NCBI RefSeq assembly: GCF_000315625.1
Contig: NW_005434432.1
Location: forward strand, 10,216 to 53,189
Source: Guillardia theta CCMP2712
Lineage: Eukaryota; Protista; Cryptophyta
Reading direction: 5' to 3'
Length of the DNA: 42,974 bases
In this document: in pieces, positions 1 to 11,765 of the stretch
Position numbering within the stretch: position 1 is the stretch's first letter
How the letters are laid out: each line of letters starts with the position of its first letter
Notes under the pieces: generated by a model
Seen by the model: the letters and a program-made list of their open reading frames with translations, nothing else
The model's database searches: none
Told to the model about the DNA's origin: nothing
Position numbers and translations under genes: made by a program

Positions 1-1446
1 CAAAACACAAGCCCGAAAAGAACCAGCACTGCTGGCACCCAGACCCGGCACCGCCAGCCCAAGCGCGAAGCCGCGCAGACAAGCAGCCTAAGGGTCAAGC
101 AATCAAGCAACAAACAGCAGGAGCATGCAGGAGGAATAAAATCCCTTAGACGCGATACCTGGAGGCAGCCGACTGACCACTGTCAGTCGAGACGTCCGCG
201 GCTGCCGCCACAAAGCTGGCGGCCGCGGACGGAGAAAGGGCAGCCGCCGATTTGCTGCGAGGTTTAGCTTGTTCCTGCTTGTTTTGCTTGAGGCACTTTT
301 TACCTTCTGCCAGTAAATCCGTAGGTGCTGCTGGTCCGAGCTCGCCTGCTTCCTCCCCGGCATCGGTCGGGTCACGCCGGTCCTTGGGCATTGCCAAGTT
401 GCTGCGGCGTCGCCGCCGTCACGGGCGGCTACCGCTGACTCGGCGGCTAGCGAGGAGGACTACCTCGAGCGGTACCGCGGTCCTGTGTCCAGCCTCCCTC
501 CGTCCGCTGCCCCAGGCGGACCCCCGGGCAACGCCGNNNNNNNNNNNNNNNNNNNNNNNNNNNNNNNNNNNNNNNNNNNNNNNNNNNNNNNNNNNNNNNN
601 NNNNNNNNNNNNNNNNNNNNNNNNNNNNNNNNNNNNNNNNNNNNNNNNNNNNNNNNNNNNNNNNNNNNNNNNNNNNNNNNNNNNNNNNNNNNNNNNNNNN
701 NNNNNNNNNNNNNNNNNNNNNNNNNNNNNNNNNNNNNNNNNNNNNNNNNNNNNNNNNNNNNNNNNNNNNNNNNNNNNNNNNNNNNNNNNNNNNNNNNNNN
801 NNNNNNNNNNNNNNNNNNNNNNNNNNNNNNNNNNNNNNNNNNNNNNNNNNNNNNNNNNNNNNNNNNNNNNNNNNNNNNNNNNNNNNNNNNNNNNNNNNNN
901 NNNNNNNNNNCACACAAAACACAAGCCCGAAAAGAACCAGCACTGCTGGCACCCAGACGCGGCAGCGCCAGCCACTCGACGTGTTTCCCACATCGGAGTC
1001 GGAGACCTCCGGCGAAGACTCCCCCTCGGGCGACTCGACAAAGTCCGAGGAGGAGCTGTCCTCTGGCTCGAGAAGTGCTTGCGCCCGCAAGGGCGTCATG
1101 CGCCTGGCACCAGACAAGAGCGCCTCCAGCGTCAGCTGCATAGTGAGGCGCTGATAGGTGGCGGCGCGTTTGCGAGCCAGGACCTCAGCAGCAGGGCCGT
1201 CATCAGGCACGAAGTGCCGACCAAACGCCGCATCCTCAAGAGGCATCGAGCGCTGAGCAATGATGTCCGCGAGATACCAGATGAAGCGGAGGGTGTCAGG
1301 ATGCAGGGTACCGTCCGTCGAGATGGCAAGAGGGATGAACGCTCGAGGAGGAGTAGTCATGGCATATGCACCCACTTGGTCAGGTCGGCAGAGCTACCAA
1401 TGGAAAATGAGCGTGACCTGAGCCACTCTCCGATGCGAGTCTCGAA

Positions 1447-1753
1447 AGGGGGCGCGGCAGCCTTCACCGCCCCAAGGACAGCAGCAGCAGCTGCAGCAGA
1501 AGCAGCAGCAGCAGCAGCAGCAGCAACTTCGGCGGTCACCTCGGCACCTGCAGCCCTCGTCCCACAGCAGCAGCTGCAGGAGTCGGAGCAGCTGCAACCG
1601 CCCCAGCAGCCCTCGCGAGGGCGGCGGCAACGGCAGAAACAGCAACGGCGGCGGCAGCCACATCCGCAGCCGCCGCAGCCGCAGCCGCAGCCGCAACACC
1701 ACCGCCACCAGCAGCACCCGCAGCAGCAGCAGCCGCAGCCGCAGCACCCGCGT

Positions 1754-1802
<49 letters not shown>

Positions 1803-1869
1803 GCCAGCGTCAGCAGCAGCGTCCGCGTCAGCAGCAACACCAGCAACCACCACAGCAGCGACCACAACC
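1447..1869 (+). repeat. CAG/CCG/CAA-rich poly-Ala/poly-Gln segment, N-terminal part of the retroelement ORF
   Basis: Ends in ACAACC (1864-1869). The RT fragment resumes with ACAACC (4159-4164) in the same frame: ...QQRPQP|RGPREQRQ... Confidence 0.75.
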
Positions 1870-1877
1870 TGCTTGAG

Positions 1878-4113
1878 CATATAGGATTTACTGGCAGAAG
1901 ATAAAAAGTGCCTCAAGCAAAACAAAGCAGGAACAAGCTGAACCGGCAGGTACACAGTCCACAGCGAGAAGCTGCACAATCACACACAAAACACAAGCCC
2001 GAAAACAACCAGCACTGCTGGCACCCAGACGCGGCAGCGCCAGCCCAAGCGCGAAGCCGCGCAGACAAGCAGCCTAAGGGTCAAGCAATCAAGCAACAAG
2101 CAGCAGGAGCATGCAGGAGGAATAAAATCCCTTACACGCGATACCCGGAGGCAGCCGACTGACCACTGTCAGTCGAGACGTCCGCTGCCGCCACAAAGCG
2201 GGCGGCCGCGGACGGAGAAAGGGCAGCCGCCGACAAGGAGCCGGCGTTGCCCGGGGGTCCGCCTGGGGCAGCGGACGGAGGGAGGCTGGACACATGAACA
2301 CGGTACCGCTCGAGGTAGTCCTCCTCGCTAGCCTCCGAGTCAGCGGTAGCCGAGTCAGTGGTAGCCGCCCGTGACGGCGGCGACGCCGCAGCAATGCCCA
2401 AGGATCGGCGTGACCCGACCGATGCCGGGGAGGAAGCAGGCGAGCTCGGACCAGCAGCAAGCACCCCAGTGGTGTCGAGCTCTCCGGAGGCACCCGACGT
2501 CACAGTGAGGGACGGAGACGCCTCGCCAGCTCCGCGCCGATCGTCGGGGCCACTCGAAGGGTTTCCCCCATCGGAGTCGGAGACCTCCGGCGAAGACTCC
2601 CCCTCGGGCGACTCGACAAAGTCCGAGGAGGAGCTGTCCTCTGGCTCGAGAAGTGCTTGCGCCCGCAAGGGCGTCATGCGCCTCGCACCAGACAAGAGCG
2701 CCTCCAGCGTCAGCTGCATGGTGAGGCGCTGATAGGTGGCGGCGCGTTTGCGAGCCAAGACCTCAGCAGCAGGTCCGTCATCAGGCACGAAGTGCCGACC
2801 AAACGCCGCATCCTCAAGAGGCATCGAGCGCTGAGCAATGATGTCCGCCAAATACCAGATGAAGCGGAGGGTGTCAGGATGCAGGGTACCGTCCGTCGAG
2901 ATGGCAAGAGGGATGAACGCTCGAGGAGGAGTAGTCATGGCATATGCAGCGCGATGTTTGCGAATCTTCTCAGACGCTGCAACATGGAGGGCGTCGAGGT
3001 TGACCTCCCCCCACTTGGTCAGGTCGGCAGAGCTACCAATGTAAGGGTGGACCAACGTCACGTCCGCCATCAAGCCCTCGTACTGCTCGGACCCTCGATC
3101 GCGGATTCCAGGGATGTGGATATCGCCCTTCATCTTGCGGCCATGAGGATGGGAGGGTACCTGCCGTCGAGAACGAGGATCCCCCACTGTATCGATGACG
3201 CTCTGAAGACCAGCTTCGTTCAGCATCGACCGAATCGTACGAGTAAGGTTGTCATGCGCCGTGGGAAGCTTGGAGGATCGGCGTTTGCAGGTCTGGAGAT
3301 GATGTGCAGCAACGGAGGGATCGAGCTCGCGCTGACATCCATCACATTTCGTCGGACACTGGCAGATCGGCATGCCATGGAGATAGCAGTCGAGCATCTG
3401 AGCATAGCGGTGCGGGAAGGCCTTGAGGGGGTAGTAGCTCGAGACTCGCATCGGAGAGTGGCTCAGGTCTCGCTCAGGAAAATGAGCGAAGATGGTAGAC
3501 TGCAAGACCCTATCCTGCGACTTGAGCGAGTGTGTCCTGCGGCTGTGCAAGGTGAGGATATCACGCTGCTGATCGGTCAGCGCAGCGCGAGCATGCACAT
3601 GTATATAGGATTTACTGGCAGAAGATAAAAAGTGCCTCAAGCAAAACAAAGCAGGAACAAGCTGAACCGGCAGGTACACAGTCCACAGCGAGAAGCTGCA
3701 CAATGTCGAGGGAAGACGCGCATTACAAGAGGAGTCACATTTCGCTGCGCAGGGGGAGGAATGAAGTGCTCATGAGACGAGTCGACGAGAGCGCGCAAAC
3801 CAGGGATGTGTACCACAGATGCCGGGGGGCGTCCTGCGTCATCAGGCACAGCAGCCGGGGCAGGTGGGATCGCCGCGCCATCTGCAGCCGGTGCAGGAGC
3901 CTTGACACGACGGTAGAGGATCGCTCCAGCATTATGAACGAAGTCGTGCGCCTCAACGAAGAAGGTCGCCAGAGGATGCTTCTGGGCACGGAGAGATCTC
4001 GAGCAGTGAACGTCCAGGCTATGAGGAGAGGGCAACATCCGGGACATCGGCTGGTCAGAGTACCAAGCGAGGAAGCGAGCGATAGCCGTATAGTAAACAG
4101 CGGGGTGTAGACC
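1878..4113 (-). mobile_element. 2.2-kb 5'-truncated copy (post-RT region, CCHC knuckle, RLE endonuclease, acidic tail, 3' UTR), interrupted by a 100-bp insert at 3603-3702
   Basis: CDGC-x9-HHLQTC, AHDN, KGDIHI, MADVTLVHP, EKIRKH and FIPLAISTDG match the RLE pattern of CRE/R2-group elements. Flanked by the TSD CTTGAG (1872-1877 / 4114-4119). Confidence 0.88.
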
Positions 4114-4158
4114 CTTGAGGCACTTTTTATCTTCTGCCAGTAAATCCTATATCTATCT

Positions 4159-5930
4159 ACAACCGCGCGGGCCGAGGGAGCAGCGGCAGTCCGGCCAATC
4201 GTCTCAGGAGTCTGAGCCTGCTCCTCCGCCGCGACCTACGCTGTCCCTCACCTCTGCGAGCGAGCGCCAAAGACAGTTGGCGATTCATCAGTTCACTGCG
4301 GGTGACCTTCATCGGGCGGTACGGACACTACTGAGCTCCGGCATCTACAGGGCTGAATCTTTCGCTGATCTTCTTGCTGAAGCACAAGAGAAGTTCCCTG
4401 ATGGTGCGTCGCCTGCCTTTGGAAGTGCTTCCGCGGATCATCTCACCCAGCAAGCGCTTGCAGTACTGCAGGTGGATTTGACTGACATCCTCGACACCAC
4501 TAGCCTGATCCAGGCAATCAAGCGCTACAGCTCCTTTGCGGGGACCGATGACCAAGGGTGGAGGATTCGGCAACACCTGTCACCCCTTTCTAGTCATCCT
4601 GCAGCTTTGAAGCTCTACTGCAAACATATCCTCCAAGGGGTCCTTCTTGGCCGGATGCCGGATCTTCTTATTCCTGCCCTGTCAGCCATTCGTCGAGGAG
4701 GCAGATTTATTCCCCTCTCCAAGGGAGCTGATAAACCTGGTCTCCGGCCAATTGTCATCGGTTCTGCACACCGTCGACTCGCGACGAAGCTTGCTTTGGC
4801 AGCGATTCGCTCATTTCTTGACCAGCACTTCCTCTCGTCTCACCCTCGAGCGATTCAGTTCGGACTCGATCGAGACGGCTGTCTGAAGTTCTCGCAAACC
4901 GCGCCAGCGCTCCTGCCCCTTCACGCTCGCGGTGATGATGAGGATGTTGCCAACCCCACAGTGCTGGTGAGTTTGGATGCAAAGAACGCCTTCAACTCCC
5001 TCGACCGCCAGGCTCTCTTCGATGCAATCGAGGGACGTGCGAGTCGCGACTACTTTGATGGGAGCATCACTGAAGGCGCAAGCTTGCCCTCTTGCGAGCA
5101 TCTCCGTTTGTTCGCCTCCTACCTCTCCAGCTACTATGGAGACTCTGCTGACCTTCGACTCTTTCACAAAAGTCAGTCAGCCTCCGTTCAGTGTACCTCG
5201 GGCGTCTGTCAGGGCGATGTCCCCTCCAGCGTATTTTTCTGCCACAGTATCCACCCCCTGCTCCTCCATATCGCAGAGCTTTTTCCCTCTGTTCGAGTCT
5301 TGGCCTATGCTGACAACGTCGTGCTTGTCGGTCCACTCGAGGATGCCGTTGCAGCTACGTCCGCTATGAAGAAGTACATGTTAGCTGATCTGAAGCTAGA
5401 GATTCAACCTCGCGAGTCGAAAGTTTACATCCCCTCCTGGCATCAACACCCTGATCTCTCGCAGCTGAAGAAGAGCCTTAAGCGCCGTCTCAAGACTCAA
5501 CTTCTTCACTTCGAGGTCGTCACTGGCGGGATTACACTTGGCGGCCTGCCTATCGGCACGGATGGATTTCATGCTAGTCAGCTCCGAGCGAAGGTTTCTA
5601 CCCTCAACGAAGAGCTCTCGAAGCTCGGGCTCGTCCAGCATGGCTTCATGTTCAAGACGCTGGTGAGCTCCAGAAGCTTGACCTCTCTGTCCACCTGGCG
5701 CTTGAGAAATACCACCGCTGGCCTTCCTCGCAGTACCTCGCCGCGCATCCCGACCTGCTAGAGTTTGCGAGGTTCAAGCGGGAGCTTCCGCATAGTCGGG
5801 GAGGGGACGAGTTCACGCCCTCTGAGGGTCTACACCCCGCTGTTTACTATACGGCTATCGCTCGCTTCCTCGCTTGGTACTCTGACCAGCCCATGTCCCG
5901 GACGCTGACCTCTCCTCATAGCCTGGACGT
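4159..5930 (+). pseudogene. Reverse transcriptase of the CRE-like element, frameshifted near 5670-5700
   Basis: RT motifs LRPIVIG, QFG, SLDAKNAFNSLDR, GVCQGDVPSS, AYADNVVLVG, LGGLPIG. The downstream frame LLEFARFKRELPHSRGG joins sequence seen in other copies. Confidence 0.9.
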
Positions 5931-6184
5931 TAGGGATTTTATTCCTCCTGCATGCTCCTGCTGCTTGTTGCTTGATTGCTTTGCCCTTAGGCTGCTTGTC
6001 TGCGCGGCTTCGCGCTTGGGCTGGCGCTGCCGCGTCTGGGTGCCAGCAGTGCTGGTTCTTTTCGGGCTTGTGTTTTGTGTGTGATTGTGCAGCTTCTCGC
6101 TGTGGACTGTGTGCCTGCCGGTTCAGCTTGTTCCTGCTTTGTTATGCTTGAGGCACTTTTTACCTTCTGCCAGTAAATCCTATA

Positions 6185-7626
6185 CTTCGTTCATAATGCT
6201 GGAGCGATTGCGATCCTCTACCGTCGTGTGAGGGCTCCTGCACCGGCTGCAGATGGCGCGGCGATCCGGAGGACTTAGGATTTACTGGCACCTGCCCCGG
6301 CTGCTGTGCCTGATGACGCAGGACGCCCCCCGGCATCTGTGGTACACATCCCTGGTTTGCGCGCTCTCGTCGACTCGTCTCGCTGTGGACTGTGTGCCTG
6401 CCGGTTCAGCTTGTTCCTGCTTTGTTTTGCTTGAGGCACTTTTTACCTTCTGCCAGTAAATCCTATATCTACCTCGTCTCATGAGCACTTCATTCCTCCC
6501 CCTGCGCAGCAAAATGTGACTCCTCTTGTCATGCGCGTCTTCCCTCGCCATGTGCATGCTCGCGCTGCGCTGACCGATCAGCAGCGTGATATCCTCACCT
6601 TGCACAGCCGCAGGACACACTCGCTTTGCTTGAGGCACTTTTTACCTTCTGCCAGTAAATCCTATAACCTCGCTCAAGTCGCAGGATAGGGTCTTGCAGT
6701 CTACCATCTTCGCTCATTTTCCTGAGCGTGACCTGAGCCACTCTCCGATGCGAGTCTCGAGCTACTACCCCCTCAAGGCCTATGCTCAGATGCTCGACTG
6801 CTATCTCCATGGCATGCCGATCTGCCAGTGTCCGACGGAATGTGATGGATGTCAGCGCGAGCTCGATCCCTCCGTTGCTGCACATCATCTCCAGACCTGC
6901 AAACGCCGATCCTCCAAGCTTCCCACGGCGCATGACAACCTTACTCGTACGATTCGGTCGATGCTGAACGAAGCTGGTCTTCAGAGCGTCATCGATACAG
7001 TGGGGGATCCTCGTTCTCGACGGCAGGTACCCTCCCATCCTCATGGCCGCAAGATGAAGGGCGATATCCACATCCCTGGAATCCGCGATCGAGGGTCTGA
7101 GCGGTACGAGGGCTTGATGGCGGACGTGACGTTGGTCCACCCTTACATTGGTAGCTCTGCCGACCTGACCAAGTGGGGAGAAGTCAACCTCGACGCCCTC
7201 CATGTTGCAGCGTCTGAGAAGATTCGCAAACATCGCGCTGCATATGCTATGACTACTCCTCCTCGAGCGTTCATCCCTCTTGCCATCTCGACGGACGGTA
7301 CCCTGCATCCTGACACCCTCCGCTTCATCTGGTATCTCGCGGACATCATTGCTCAGCGCTCGATGCCTCTTGAGGATGCGGCGTTTGGTCGGCACTTCGT
7401 GCCTGATGACGGCCCTGCTGCTGAGGTCCTGGCTCGCAAACGCGCCGCCACCTATCAGCGCCTCACTATGCAGCTGACGCTGGAGGCGCTCTTGTCTGGT
7501 GCCAGGCGCATGACGCCCTTGCGGGCGCAAGCACTTCTCGAGCCAGAGGACAGCTCCTCCTCGGACTTTGTCGAGTCGCCCGAGGGGGAGTCTTCACCGG
7601 AGGTCTGCGACTCCGATGGGGGAAGG
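6185..7626 (+). pseudogene. Post-RT, Zn-knuckle and RLE endonuclease part of the element, broken by three short self-insertions
   Basis: ORF 6694-7878 is nearly identical to the C-terminal part of ORF 2132-3703. Inserts at 6268-6288, 6382-6472 and 6626-6668. Confidence 0.85.
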
Positions 7627-10600
7627 CGACCGATGCCGGGGAGGAAGCAGGCGAGCTCGGACCAGCAGCAAGCACCCCAGTGGTGTCGAGCTCTCCGGAG
7701 GCCGGGCACCCGACGTCACAGTGAGGGACGGAGACGCCTCGCCAGCTCCGCGCCGATCGTCGGCGCCACTCTGGATGTTTCCCCCATCGGAGTCGGAGAC
7801 CTCCGGCGAAGACTCCTTCTCGGGCGACTCGATAAAGTCCGAGGAGGAGCTATAGACGGATTTACTGGCAGAAGGTAAAAAGTGCCTCGGGTGCCAGCAG
7901 TGCTGGTTCTTTTCGGGCTTGTGTTTTGTGTGTGATTGTGCAGCTTCTCGCTGTGCGCTGTGTGCCTGGAGGTTTAGCTTGTTCCTGCTTTGTTTTGCTT
8001 GAGGCTTTGTTTTGCGTGAGGCACTTTTTACCTTCTGCCAGTAAATCCATTGTTTCCTCAAGCAACGGAGGGCGTCATGCCGCAAGGGCGTCATGCGCCT
8101 GGCACCAGACAAGAGCGCCTCCAGCGTCAGCTGCATAGTGAGGCGCTGATAGGTGGCGGCGCGTTTGCGAGCCAGGACCTCAGCAGCAGGGCTGTCATCA
8201 GGCACGAAGTGCCGACCAAACGCCGCATCCTCAAGAGGCATCGAGCGCTGAGCAATGATGTCCGCCAGATACCAGATGAAGCGGAGGGTGTCAGGATGCA
8301 GGGTACCGTCCAAGAGGGATGAACGCTCGAGGAGGGAACCATGTCGGATTTACTGGCAGAAGGAGGAGTAGTCATGGCATATGCAGCGCGATGTTTGCGA
8401 ATCTTCTCAGACGCTGCAACATGGAGGGCGTCGAGGTTGAACTCCCCTGCTGCCCTTTCTCCGTCCACGACCGCCCGCTTTGTGGCGGCAGCGGACGTCT
8501 CGACTGACAGTGGTCAGTCGGCTGCCTCCGGGTATCGCGTCTAAGGGATTTTATCCTCCTGCATGCTCCTGCTGCTTGTTGCTTGATTGCCTGACCCTTA
8601 GGCTGCTTGTCTGCGCGGCTTCGCGCTTGGGCTGGCGGTGCCGCGTCTGGTTGCCAGCAGTGCTGGTTCTTTTCGGGCTTGTGTTTTGTGTGTGATTGTG
8701 CAGCTTCTCGCTGTTCGCTGTGTGCCCGGAGGTTTAGCTTGTTCCTGCTTTGTTATGCTTGAGGCACTTTTTACCTTCTGCCAGTAAATCCTATTCCCCA
8801 CTTGGTCAGGTCGGCAGAGCTACCAACGTAAGGGTGGACCAAAGTTGTCACGTCCGCCATCAAGCCCTCGTACTGCTCGGACCCTCGATCGCGGATTCCA
8901 GGGATGTGGATATCGCCCTTCATCTTGCGGCCATGAGGATGGGAGGGTACCTGCCGTCGAGAACGAGGATCCCCGACTGTATCGATGACGCTCTGAAGAC
9001 CAGCTTCGTTCAGCATCGACCGAATCGTACGAGTAAGGGTTGTCATGCGCCGTGGGAAGCTTGGAGGATCGGCGTTTGCAGGTCTGGAGATGATGTGCAG
9101 CAACGGAGGGATCGAGCTCGCGCTGACATCCATCACATTCCGTCGGACAATGGCAGATAGGCATGCCGCAGTGCCATGGAGATAGCAGCCGAGCATCTGA
9201 GCATAGCGGTGCGGGAAGGCCTTGAGGGGGTAGTAGCTCGAGACTCGCATCGGAGAGTGGCTCAGGTCTCGCTCAGGAAAATGAGGAAAGATGGTAGACT
9301 GCAAGACCCTATCCTGCGACTTGAGCCACTGGCAGAGTTGGGTACGGGAAGCTGAGGGAACGGATTTACTGGCAGAAGGTAAAAAGTGCCTCGAAGCAGT
9401 AAGGCGGGAAGGTGCTCAAAGAGCAGAACAAGGGTCTGATAGCTGGACGAGGAAGGATCATCTGCGCGGCTTCGAGCTTGGGCTGGCGAAGCCGGGTCTG
9501 CTGACGGTTGCCAGCAGTGCTGGTTCTTTTCGGGCTTGTGTGTGTTTGTGCAGCTTCTCGCTGGTCGCTGTGTGCAAGCAGGTTTAGCTTGTTCCCAGAG
9601 GGTTAAGGATTTACTGGCAGAAGGTAAAAAGTGCCTCAAGCAAAACAATGCAGGAACAAGCTAAACCTCCTGGCACACAGCGCACAGCGAGAAGCTGCAC
9701 AAACACACACAAAACACAAGCCCGAAAAGAACCAGCACTGCTGGCAACCGTCAGCAGACCCGGCACCGCCAGCCCAAGCGCGAAGCCGCACAGACAAGCT
9801 GCTCAACGAAGCTGGTCTTCAGAGCGTCATCGATACAGTCGGGGATCCTCGTTCTCGACGGCAGGTACCCTCCCATCCTCATGGCCGCAAGATGAAGGGC
9901 GATATCCACATCCCTGGAATCCGCGATCGAGGGTCCGAGCAGTACGAGGGCTTGATGGCGGACGTGACGTTGGAGGGGACGAGTTCACGCCCTCTGAGGG
10001 TCTACACCCCGCTGTTTACTATACGGCTATCGCTCGCTTCCTCGCTTGGTACTCTGACCAGCCGATGTCACGTACGCTGCCCTCTCCTCATAGCCTGGAC
10101 GTTCACTGCTCGAGATCTCTCCGTGCCCAGAAGCATCCTCTGGCGACCTTCTTCGTTGAGGCGCACGACTTCGTTCATAATGCTGGAGCGATCCTCTACC
10201 GTCGTGTGAGGGCTCCTGCACCGGCTGCAGATGGCGCGGCGATCCCACCTGCCCCGGCTGCTATGCCTGATGACGCAGGACGCCCCCCGGCATATGTGGT
10301 ACACATCCCTGGTTTGCGCGCTCTCGTCGACTCGTCTCATGAGCACTTCATTCCTCCGCCTGCGCAGCGAAATGTGACTCCTCTTGTCATGCGCGTCTTC
10401 CCTCGCCATGTGCATGCTCGCGCTGCGCTGACCGATCAGCAGCGTGATATCCTCACCTTGCACAGCCGCAGGACATACTCGCTCAGTGGCTCAGGTCTCT
10501 ATCCTGCGACTTGAGCGAGTACGTCCTTCGGCTGTGCAAGGTAAGAATATCACGCTGCTGATCAGTGAGGGCAGCGCGAGCATGGGACATGGCGAGGAAA

Positions 10601-11765
10601 CATCCGCAAGACAAGAGGAGTCACATTGCGCTGCGCAGGCGGAGGAATGAAGTGCTCATGAGACGAGTCGACGAAAGCGTCCTGCGTCATCAGGCACAGC
10701 AGCCGGGTCAGGTGGGATCCCCGCGCCATCTGCAGCCGGTGCAGGAGCCCTCACGCGACGGTAGAGAATCGCTCCAGCAAACGCGGCTCAAACACACGAA
10801 ACATGAGACCAACAAGACGGATTTACTGGCAGAAGGTAAAAAGTGCCTCAAGCAAAGACCGAAGGGTCTAGTTGCCAGCAGTGTTGCTAACTTTCGGTCT
10901 TGTGTTTCGTGTGTTTGAGCCGCGTTTGTTGGTGTGTTCCGTACACCACTTTTGTTGCTGTGTGCTCTCTGCCTGACGGTTTTGCTTGTTGCTGCTTTCT
11001 TCTGCTTGAGGCACTTTTTACCTTAGTAGTCATGGCATATCCAGCCCGGTGTTTGCGACCATCAAGCCCTCGTACTGCTCAGCCTTGCCTTGCTTGGTTG
11101 GGGTACGAGAAGCAGATGAGAAACAAAGTGATCCTGTCATGGGAGGAATGCAAGAGCAAGATTCTCAAGTTGAAGGAGGAGAAGTCAACAAGATGCTCGG
11201 TATGGTCAAGCCGCGCGAGAGAGTATGCAGTCCCCAGAGACAGATGCGAAGTATCCTACAGATGCAAATGGTCAGTCACAGGTCACTCAGTGTGAGTCCT
11301 TGACTAACGACAACTCGACTGTCTTTGACTTGCCCTGATAGCTCCAGAGCCCTTATTCCAAGGCTTGTAGTAGTGTGTCAGTGTGGTAGAGGACTGAAAT
11401 TCTTCCAAAGTGTTGCGGGCTGAAGCTGAACCAACCGGAAAGAAACACTGAAAGCCCGATGTTGCTGAGACTAGCTCTGATGAGGGAGTCTGCTTGACTC
11501 AAGGGAGTCTGCTTGACTTTGAGTGAGGCTACACCTCCAACTCAGGTGTAGCCTCTCCTCCATCTCAGCAGGGTCCACATCTAGCAAGTAACCATTGAGA
11601 CCTTCGCTTTTCACTGCATTTCTTCTATGACGGTAAGATCAACTCATTATCAGTGATGTTACTAAGGGTATAATTGTTTGTATTCTTTGTAAGGGTATGA
11701 TTGTTTGCTGTCGAAAAATCAAGATCGATATGCTCATGGACCGGCGAATCATATTGATCGTTCCA

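Follow-up and report, generated by a model that had tools for sequence, protein, structure and literature searches.

Self-nested arrays of a single restriction-like endonuclease retrotransposon as candidate centromeres of the cryptophyte Guillardia theta

The window analyzed here is a stretch of 42,974 nucleotides on contig C242 (NW_005434432.1, positions 10,216 to 53,189) of the Guillardia theta CCMP2712 nuclear scaffold assembly (87.1 Mb, 669 contigs; scaffolds and contigs are named C1, C2 and so on). Its first 11 kb are one edge of a roughly 21-kb nest made by a single non-long-terminal-repeat (non-LTR) retrotransposon family of the restriction-like endonuclease (RLE) type, and such nests are so far the strongest candidates for the centromeres of a cryptophyte. 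The family was mapped with a single natural long copy serving only as coordinate ruler (L026:2679-7600, which is C77:45678-50599). Ruler mapping resolved window positions 1-11075 into about 38 pieces, all of this family, in both orientations and from many element coordinates. The 31-nt 3' terminus of the element, GAGGCACTTTTTACCTTCTGCCAGTAAATCC, was matched 13 times in the window at three or fewer mismatches, between positions 290 and 10849 (six matches on the plus strand and seven on the minus strand), whereas none of 100 shuffled sequences matched it under the same limit. Two extra short copies of the final 14 nt, at 6278 and 8346, bring the total to 15. Neither termini nor pieces of the family were found in the window from 11.1 to 43 kb. 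An earlier sequence-only reading of this DNA had described an 11-kb mosaic of one family with about 15 3' ends in both orientations, inserted into itself at many positions and absent from the next 32 kb. The 13 full and two to three partial ends, the pieces at scattered element coordinates and the empty 32 kb agree with that description throughout. The pieces are given below in window coordinates.

1..536, mixed strands: three left-edge pieces placed by ruler mapping (88-96% identity), as in the next three lines
1-250, minus: 3' untranslated region (UTR) plus C-terminal coding piece, ruler 4807-4561
261-320, plus: 60-nt 3' end, ruler 4850-4910
326-536, plus: C-terminal coding piece, ruler 4332-4552
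537..910: assembly gap hiding at least one junction, its flanks on opposite element strands
911..1405, minus: 3'UTR fragment and two RLE/C-terminal coding fragments, from ruler mapping
1408-1445, plus: 38-nt coding fragment, ruler 3318-3355
1445-1869, plus: piece of the CAG-rich, polyglutamine (polyQ)-coding 5' region, cut at 1869 by the next insertion
1880..4115, minus: 5'-truncated 2.1-kb copy with its 3' end at 1880, from ruler mapping; it carries the CCHC knuckle, the RLE, the Ser/Asp-rich C-terminal tail and the 3'UTR
3604-3704, minus: 100-nt 3' piece interrupting the copy at 1880..4115, with a target duplication of about 20 nt
4114..4151, plus: 38-nt 3'-end piece, followed by an 11-nt TAT-rich tail
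4159..7624, plus: 3.2-kb copy (ruler 1044-4228) that starts upstream of the reverse transcriptase and extends to the RLE
5932-6184, 6378-6467 and 6625-6668, plus: same-strand 3' stubs of 253, 90 and 44 nt inside the copy at 4159..7624
6278-6291, minus: short terminus inside the same copy
7625..9461, mixed strands: dense mosaic, from terminus matches and ruler mapping, as in the next three lines
7625-7851, 8080-8447 and 8796-9326, minus: coding pieces
7858-7888 (minus), 7889-8048 (plus), 8346-8359 (minus), 8449-8794 (plus) and 9362-9398 (minus): 3' pieces, 31-347 nt
9326-9461, minus: two 5'-region fragments
9461..10856, mixed strands: mosaic of an inverted 3'UTR pair, coding pieces and a 3' end, from ruler mapping, as in the next four lines
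9461-9595 (plus) and 9602-9802 (minus): the inverted 3'UTR pair, from ruler mapping
9800-10485, plus: two coding pieces
10499-10779, minus: two coding pieces
10819-10856, minus: 3' end
10857..11075, plus: nest edge, where small coding scraps accompany a 3'UTR 82% identical to the ruler, from an older diverged subfamily

The sequence on the left of the assembly gap (326-536) lies on the plus strand and that on its right (911-973) on the minus strand of the element, the latter mapping to ruler 4811-4749. The two flanks are therefore not continuous and no reading frame can be followed across 537-910. The 3.2-kb copy at 4159..7624 lacks about 73 to 83 nt, at 5667/5678, that are present in other copies, and the borders of its three same-strand stubs comprise one 64-nt target deletion and target duplications of 8 and 6 nt. 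At the right edge the diverged 3'UTR contributes one more terminus copy (11008-11022), which is cut at 11022 and so lacks the last bases, and beyond 11075 the DNA is unique. The open reading frames (ORFs) between 11.1 and 43 kb carry domains of host type and include a coiled-coil protein, a Glyco_transf_49 protein and an Erv1/Alr protein. On the other side the window start directly adjoins another run of Ns (C242:10001-10215), and the family continues to the first base of C242, which gives the nest its length of about 21 kb and means that it is cut by the contig end. The first 2.4 kb of C242 are an inverted duplicate of window positions about 5900-7600. An unrelated 4.5-kb repeat, with a 757-aa open frame lacking any Pfam domain, lies inside the nest at C242:2500-7000. 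This repeat has a 100% identical copy at C9:152.9-156.9 kb; its other copies are dispersed, some of them near other nests (C75:314 kb and C211:44-48 kb).

The element measures about 4.9 kb from its 5' end to the 3' terminus and its coding sequence reads as one long ORF. Upstream of window position 4159, five long copies have the sequence in common through the CAG-rich tract, and two of the five reach the common 5' end, ACTGTTTCAGCTTGATTCC... The encoded protein contains, in order, an N-terminal helical region with the motif L..LP.LLL...I..R...F..G.W..L, which is also found in distant relatives, a polyQ tract of a length that varies between copies, the reverse transcriptase, a linker, the CCHC knuckle (CQCPTKCDGCQ...HHLQTC), a PD-(D/E)xK endonuclease (KGDIHIPG...ADVTLVHP...K) and a tail. 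This C-terminal tail of about 190 residues is rich in Ser, Asp and Pro and ends about 250 nt before the terminus. The 3'UTR of about 250 nt finishes in ...CAGTAAATCC (...AAATCC) plus 0-12 variable TAT-rich bases, among which TATA accounts for 34%, TATG for 13%, ACTA for 7% and ATTG or ATTA for 8%. Sequencing runs made for other studies and in other years yielded short Logan contigs that contain the canonical sequence preceding 4159, the 83 nt missing from the window copy and one junction of the C7 nest. These contigs are shorter than the window mosaic and none spans the mosaic or its gap. Of the words sampled from window 911-6900, about 60% are also present in metagenome runs (lake-water, runoff and aquatic), indicating that near-identical element DNA occurs in environmental samples.

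Motif C of the reverse transcriptase reads YADN rather than the usual YADD (window 5290-5320, LAYADNVVLVG). The nearer relatives P0004, P0197, P0044, P0075 and P0046 share YADN, whereas the distant P0020, P0102 and P0076 keep DD. As copies 99-100% identical to one another exist, the family is clearly active and the change must be tolerated; a link between YADN and the very short inserts described below is speculation. The distant relative P0076 (1577 aa) bears the source name "Ubiquitin carboxyl-terminal hydrolase" and carries a long extra stretch N-terminal to the shared helical region, and may be an RLE element fused to a deubiquitinase-like domain.

Sequence and predicted fold together confirm that the element is an RLE-type non-LTR retrotransposon (R2/R4/NeSL/CRE/Hero group), the class to which the sequence-only reading had assigned it. 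Pfam RVT_1 matches the window ORF at 4115-5761. When a profile of ten full-length relatives was compared with the PDB, the best matches were R2 proteins (9nl3 and 9dou, E about 3e-21), with L1 ORF2p reaching only 6e-4 and the group II intron and retron reverse transcriptases also behind R2. The profile match to R2 continues, weakly and colinearly, over the knuckle and the nuclease. A single-sequence PDB search gave no match, R2 being reached only by the family profile. In the ORF at 6694-7530 the residues C50, C53, H65, C69, H80, D124, D144 and K176 are invariant across an alignment of 13 relatives. An AlphaFold (AF2) model of this ORF (predicted local distance difference test score, pLDDT, 78; predicted template modeling score, pTM, 0.80) had as its top seven PDB matches R2 structures throughout (E 7.6e-6 to 5.7e-3), followed by other PD-(D/E)xK nucleases. 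No Pfam domain was found upstream of the reverse transcriptase in the G. theta copies or in residues 1-400 of P0004, which is weak evidence against an N-terminal apurinic-type endonuclease.

Among named systems the element most resembles R2, which gives the best sequence and fold matches (9nl3, 9dou and 8gh6), has the same order of reverse transcriptase, CCHC knuckle and PD-(D/E)xK endonuclease, and likewise inserts by target-primed reverse transcription with 5' truncation. Unlike the G. theta element, R2 has motif C YADD and cuts one defined sequence in the 28S ribosomal DNA (rDNA), which its N-terminal zinc-finger and Myb domains read; the nests contain neither rDNA nor another RNA gene, and the element has neither a target motif nor an N-terminal DNA-binding domain detectable by Pfam. 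The CRE clade comprises early-branching RLE elements with an A-rich or poly(A) 3' tail, of which CRE1/2, SLACS and CZAR occupy spliced-leader genes and Cnl1 and MoTeR telomere repeats. Our element shares with them the RLE machinery and locus-restricted insertion but it targets neither spliced-leader genes nor telomere repeats, and its 3' end is TAT-rich with no A-rich tail. Protein searches for named clade references (word-indexed, HMMER, cluster look-up and ESM Atlas) returned only metagenomic and transcriptomic relatives and G. theta proteins.

How the copies arise was read from the junctions of the nests sampled. Across the whole genome the 31-nt terminus marks 699 3' ends, against six 5' ends. 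The 100 pieces that reach the 3' end in the sampled nests have a median length below 100 nt, a quarter of them being shorter than 40 nt, and in 36 simple insert-in-host events the target duplications are mostly 2-10 bp, with deletions of 64-73 bp in two. This imbalance of ends, the short 3' pieces and the short duplications point to target-primed reverse transcription that usually aborts early; the marks of that process, 5' truncation, small target duplications or deletions and absence of LTRs, are all seen. In 85 of 102 distinct 3' junctions the downstream flank is another stretch of the element, the coordinates being scattered from one end of it to the other. The insertion points are denser in the 3' half because that half is more abundant. 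The 102 junctions yielded no strong target motif, only a weak C-rich bias, and the earlier claim of sequence-relaxed insertion is thus upheld. Nor was there a single defined target sequence, a feature typical though not strictly defining of the RLE group.

An RNA gene as target was rejected, since scans at Rfam thresholds of 100 kb of nests and of window 1-14 kb found no rRNA, tRNA, small nuclear RNA or spliced-leader gene. Two hits below threshold were set aside: isrG is the CAG tract, and MIR862 (35 bits against a cut-off of 100) is explained by the long hairpin that the head-to-head 3'UTR pair at 9461-9802 forms. In four nests examined in detail no satellite DNA was found besides the element's own CAG tract.

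Genome-wide positions of the termini are those among the matches listed, an incomplete census. Among them, 23 of the 24 largest scaffolds have one nest interval each, of 1-29 kb, as do dozens of smaller contigs, and all extra matches on C1-C24 listed by further searches with tail classes and the reverse transcriptase region fall in the same intervals. Together the C1-C24 intervals amount to about 171 kb of about 26 Mb. On C1-C22, the set covered by scaffold lengths and hence by relative positions, nests lie 22-86% of the way along the scaffold and never closer than 155 kb to either end. The telomere repeat is CCCTAAA. Three scaffolds, C2, C5 and C7, are bounded on both sides by arrays of it in telomere orientation, and they contain exactly one nest apiece, measuring roughly 10, 16.5 and 13 kb; C8 begins with the telomere repeat and has its nest at 788-793 kb. 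Sampled nests have unique sequence on both sides and gene-dense flanks in which ORFs with Pfam domains start within a few kb, whereas the nests themselves hold no host genes. Mapping of the 3' terminus had been proposed as a check on whether there is one cluster per chromosome, and this is the arrangement on 23 of the 24 largest scaffolds and on all three telomere-bounded ones. The distance to telomere repeats, a second proposed check, shows the nests to be far from CCCTAAA arrays and hence non-terminal. The sequence-only reading had offered a subtelomere as the alternative to a centromere; this was rejected, the nests on C1-C22 being internal and the telomere repeats lying elsewhere.

In the interior of three of these four nests the pieces are 95-99% identical to the ruler, and in the older C2 nest 87-95% throughout; towards the edges all four drop to 83-92%. 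On many contigs the nest edges carry the diverged 3'UTR variant that is seen at window 10857-11024. A young interior with diverged edges fits continued insertion into the core. The C5 nest (696-701 kb) contains tandem mosaic blocks about 1.8-1.9 kb apart at 100% identity, which may be a first step from nest to satellite-like array or an assembly duplication.

Related RLE families in the same genome serve as an internal control. Of these, P0197 shares 37% identity with the nest family, and a second family shares 42-45% with P0197. Copies of these sisters are dispersed on chromosome arms (C19:797 kb; C22:193, 307 and 572 kb; C31:86 kb; C4:600 kb; C5:506 kb; and others) with flanks that are mutually unrelated. 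Dispersed copies are thus both resolved by the assembly and tolerated by the genome, and it is the nest family alone that is confined to one nest per chromosome. Copies of the two sister families span C19:796.7-800.5 kb, C22:193.6-197.3 kb, C31:86.0-89.7 kb and C4:598.7-602.1 kb; one of the two families is about 4.3 kb long and has the ends TTTTGAAATGGCGTG... and ...TTAACTTAACTTTGAGT.

One nest per telomere-bounded scaffold, an internal position, self-nesting, an age gradient and specificity to one family form the pattern expected of a centromere-specific retrotransposon, and the distribution strongly suggests that the nests are centromeres. We give a probability of roughly two in three to the reading that they are centromeres built by a single RLE-type element that centromeric chromatin or a kinetochore-bound partner, not a DNA motif, would direct there. 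In this scheme the element is copied by target-primed reverse transcription that usually aborts very early, so that most insertions are 30-350-nt 3' stubs flanked by 2-10-bp target duplications. New copies, which the chromatin or its partner would bring to the nest, land almost only in existing nest sequence and at no fixed site. The outcome is one self-nested array of about 2-30 kb per chromosome, younger inside and older at its edges. The fuller statement, that these are functional cryptophyte centromeres of one RLE-type element, that centromeric chromatin or a kinetochore protein directs integration and that a member of the R2-like group thereby reads an epigenetic address and keeps rebuilding the centromere from within, we would put at even odds. 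The Ser/Asp-rich tail is a candidate guiding module, for it is present in the nest family and in the relative P0004 (70% protein identity; from run SRR22388310), whereas in the other aligned relatives, including the dispersed P0197, the protein ends soon after the nuclease.

Several observations weigh against the centromere reading. Centromere function is read here from the position and number of the nests alone. C16 (1.0 Mb) is the sole member of the 24 largest scaffolds that has no terminus among the matches listed; its nest may be hidden in a gap, or the scaffold may be a mis-join or a chromosome arm or have a different centromere. About 18 of the 60 largest contigs likewise have no nest among the matches listed, and these may be chromosome arms. 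Second patches occur away from the nest at C21:590.2-590.5 kb (about 300 bp) and C90:300.4-301.0 kb (about 530 bp). Both are multi-piece mosaics, 57 and 96 kb from the main nest, the C21 one containing that scaffold's stray terminus, and they might be remnants of former or relocated nests, or else small segmental copies; on C1 a 1.9-kb patch lies 6 kb from the nest. At several scaffold ends a short telomere array lies 0.1-10 kb inside the end and not at the tip, with repeats of about 18-20 nt outside it (e.g., GCTGCCGAAAATAACGGC); this reflects either an unusual structure of the chromosome ends or an artefact of scaffolding. The assembly is an older, scaffold-based one with gaps within most nests, and nest sizes are as assembled. 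Finally, inserts share the orientation of the host copy in 55 cases and oppose it in 30 (binomial p = 0.009), a bias that pure chromatin guidance does not predict. The bias shows that strand matters in some way as well, and hints at a strand-specific nick preference or at a role for the host copy's sequence or transcription, of which the simplest would be a preference for nicking the pyrimidine-rich coding strand.

The same bias is accommodated by homology-guided self-insertion, in which the RNA or cDNA pairs with existing copies and the nests have nothing to do with centromere function. That the element forms the downstream flank at 85 of the 102 junctions, and that some 5' junctions show microhomology, is equally what pairing would give. 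However, the sites of insertion range across the entire element and share no homology with the inserted 3' end, and homology alone leaves unexplained why each telomere-bounded scaffold has exactly one nest. The isolated patches at C21:590 kb and C90:300 kb are still only 300-530 bp; that they have not grown argues against attraction of insertions by element sequence by itself. We consider self-insertion of this kind unlikely. The lack of a target motif, the failure of isolated scraps to attract copies and the dispersal of the sister families favor guidance of the nest family by chromatin or the kinetochore over self-pairing, and chromatin guidance is what we infer.

A tether to a silent mark, with one island of non-centromeric heterochromatin per chromosome by chance, would produce the same locus restriction with no target motif, and such a "safe haven" would suit nests that hold no host genes within gene-dense DNA. 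Yet one site per chromosome, never terminal, is the signature of centromeres and not of heterochromatin in general, and the unrelated repeat of C242:2500-7000 is dispersed and only rarely found in or near nests, which are thus not general transposon graveyards. We hold this explanation to be slightly less probable still than self-insertion. Random insertion followed by selection, with survival only in one dispensable region per chromosome, draws on the gene density that the sampled flanks suggest, but stubs of 30-350 nt should be tolerated in intergenic DNA and introns, and three small off-nest patches were all that was seen among 699 termini. Sister families of similar size moreover persist dispersed on the arms, and we judge selection to be a very improbable cause. 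Least probable is an assembly artefact in which collapsed repeats were placed arbitrarily or the nests are in fact subtelomeric: most nests have gaps and many small contigs consist of nest sequence only, but the unique flanks of the sampled nests, the distance of at least 155 kb from the ends of C1-C22, the telomere repeats elsewhere and the independent runs that reproduce the canonical sequence and the C7 junction all stand against it.

Centromeres marked by one retrotransposon have a precedent in green algae. Clusters of Zepp or ZeppL, L1-clade elements with an apurinic-type endonuclease and poly(A) tails, occur once per chromosome in Chlorella vulgaris, Coccomyxa subellipsoidea and Chlamydomonas reinhardtii and are taken as the centromere marker. 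As in those algae, a single self-nesting family forms one cluster per chromosome-sized G. theta scaffold and, but for the tiny patches on C21 and C90, is absent from the arms. In contrast to Zepp, the G. theta element resides in a cryptophyte, has a C-terminal CCHC knuckle and an R2-type RLE, lacks poly(A) and inserts mostly as extreme 3' stubs. Its behavior is that of Zepp, but it falls outside that L1-clade family. DIRS-1 of Dictyostelium and the CRM chromoviruses of plants also seek centromeres, and DIRS-1, like the Zepp-like elements, inserts into its own copies. These elements and the LINEs (long interspersed nuclear elements) of the apurinic endonuclease (APE) type differ from ours in using a tyrosine recombinase, a chromodomain integrase or APE machinery where an RLE is used here. 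Centromere-enriched retroelements have been described as G2/Jockey-3 of Drosophila (PMC6516634), the Celine LINE of poplar (PMC11288735) and Grem-LINE1 of Mucor (10.1101/706580). Most of these elements lie within or beside satellites or other repeats, whereas the four G. theta nests hold no satellite and, apart from the one unrelated repeat, almost only one family.

We found no description of the nuclear centromeres of any cryptophyte in the searchable literature, and Cryptista are unrepresented in a 2026 centromere atlas preprint. Nor did we find such nests described there for Guillardia or any other cryptophyte, although an earlier mention in the genome paper or Repbase is possible. If the centromere reading is true, about one candidate centromere per G. 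theta chromosome is now mapped, and extrapolation from the three telomere-bounded scaffolds would give about 70 chromosomes of about 1.2 Mb. Self-nesting single-family centromeres would then have arisen independently of the L1-type Zepp and through a different integration machinery, and, on the fuller statement above, a member of a normally sequence-specific R2-like group would have switched to an epigenetic address. A small and recently active element with dispersed sisters in the same genome would provide a test system for how a target-primed retrotransposon finds the centromere.

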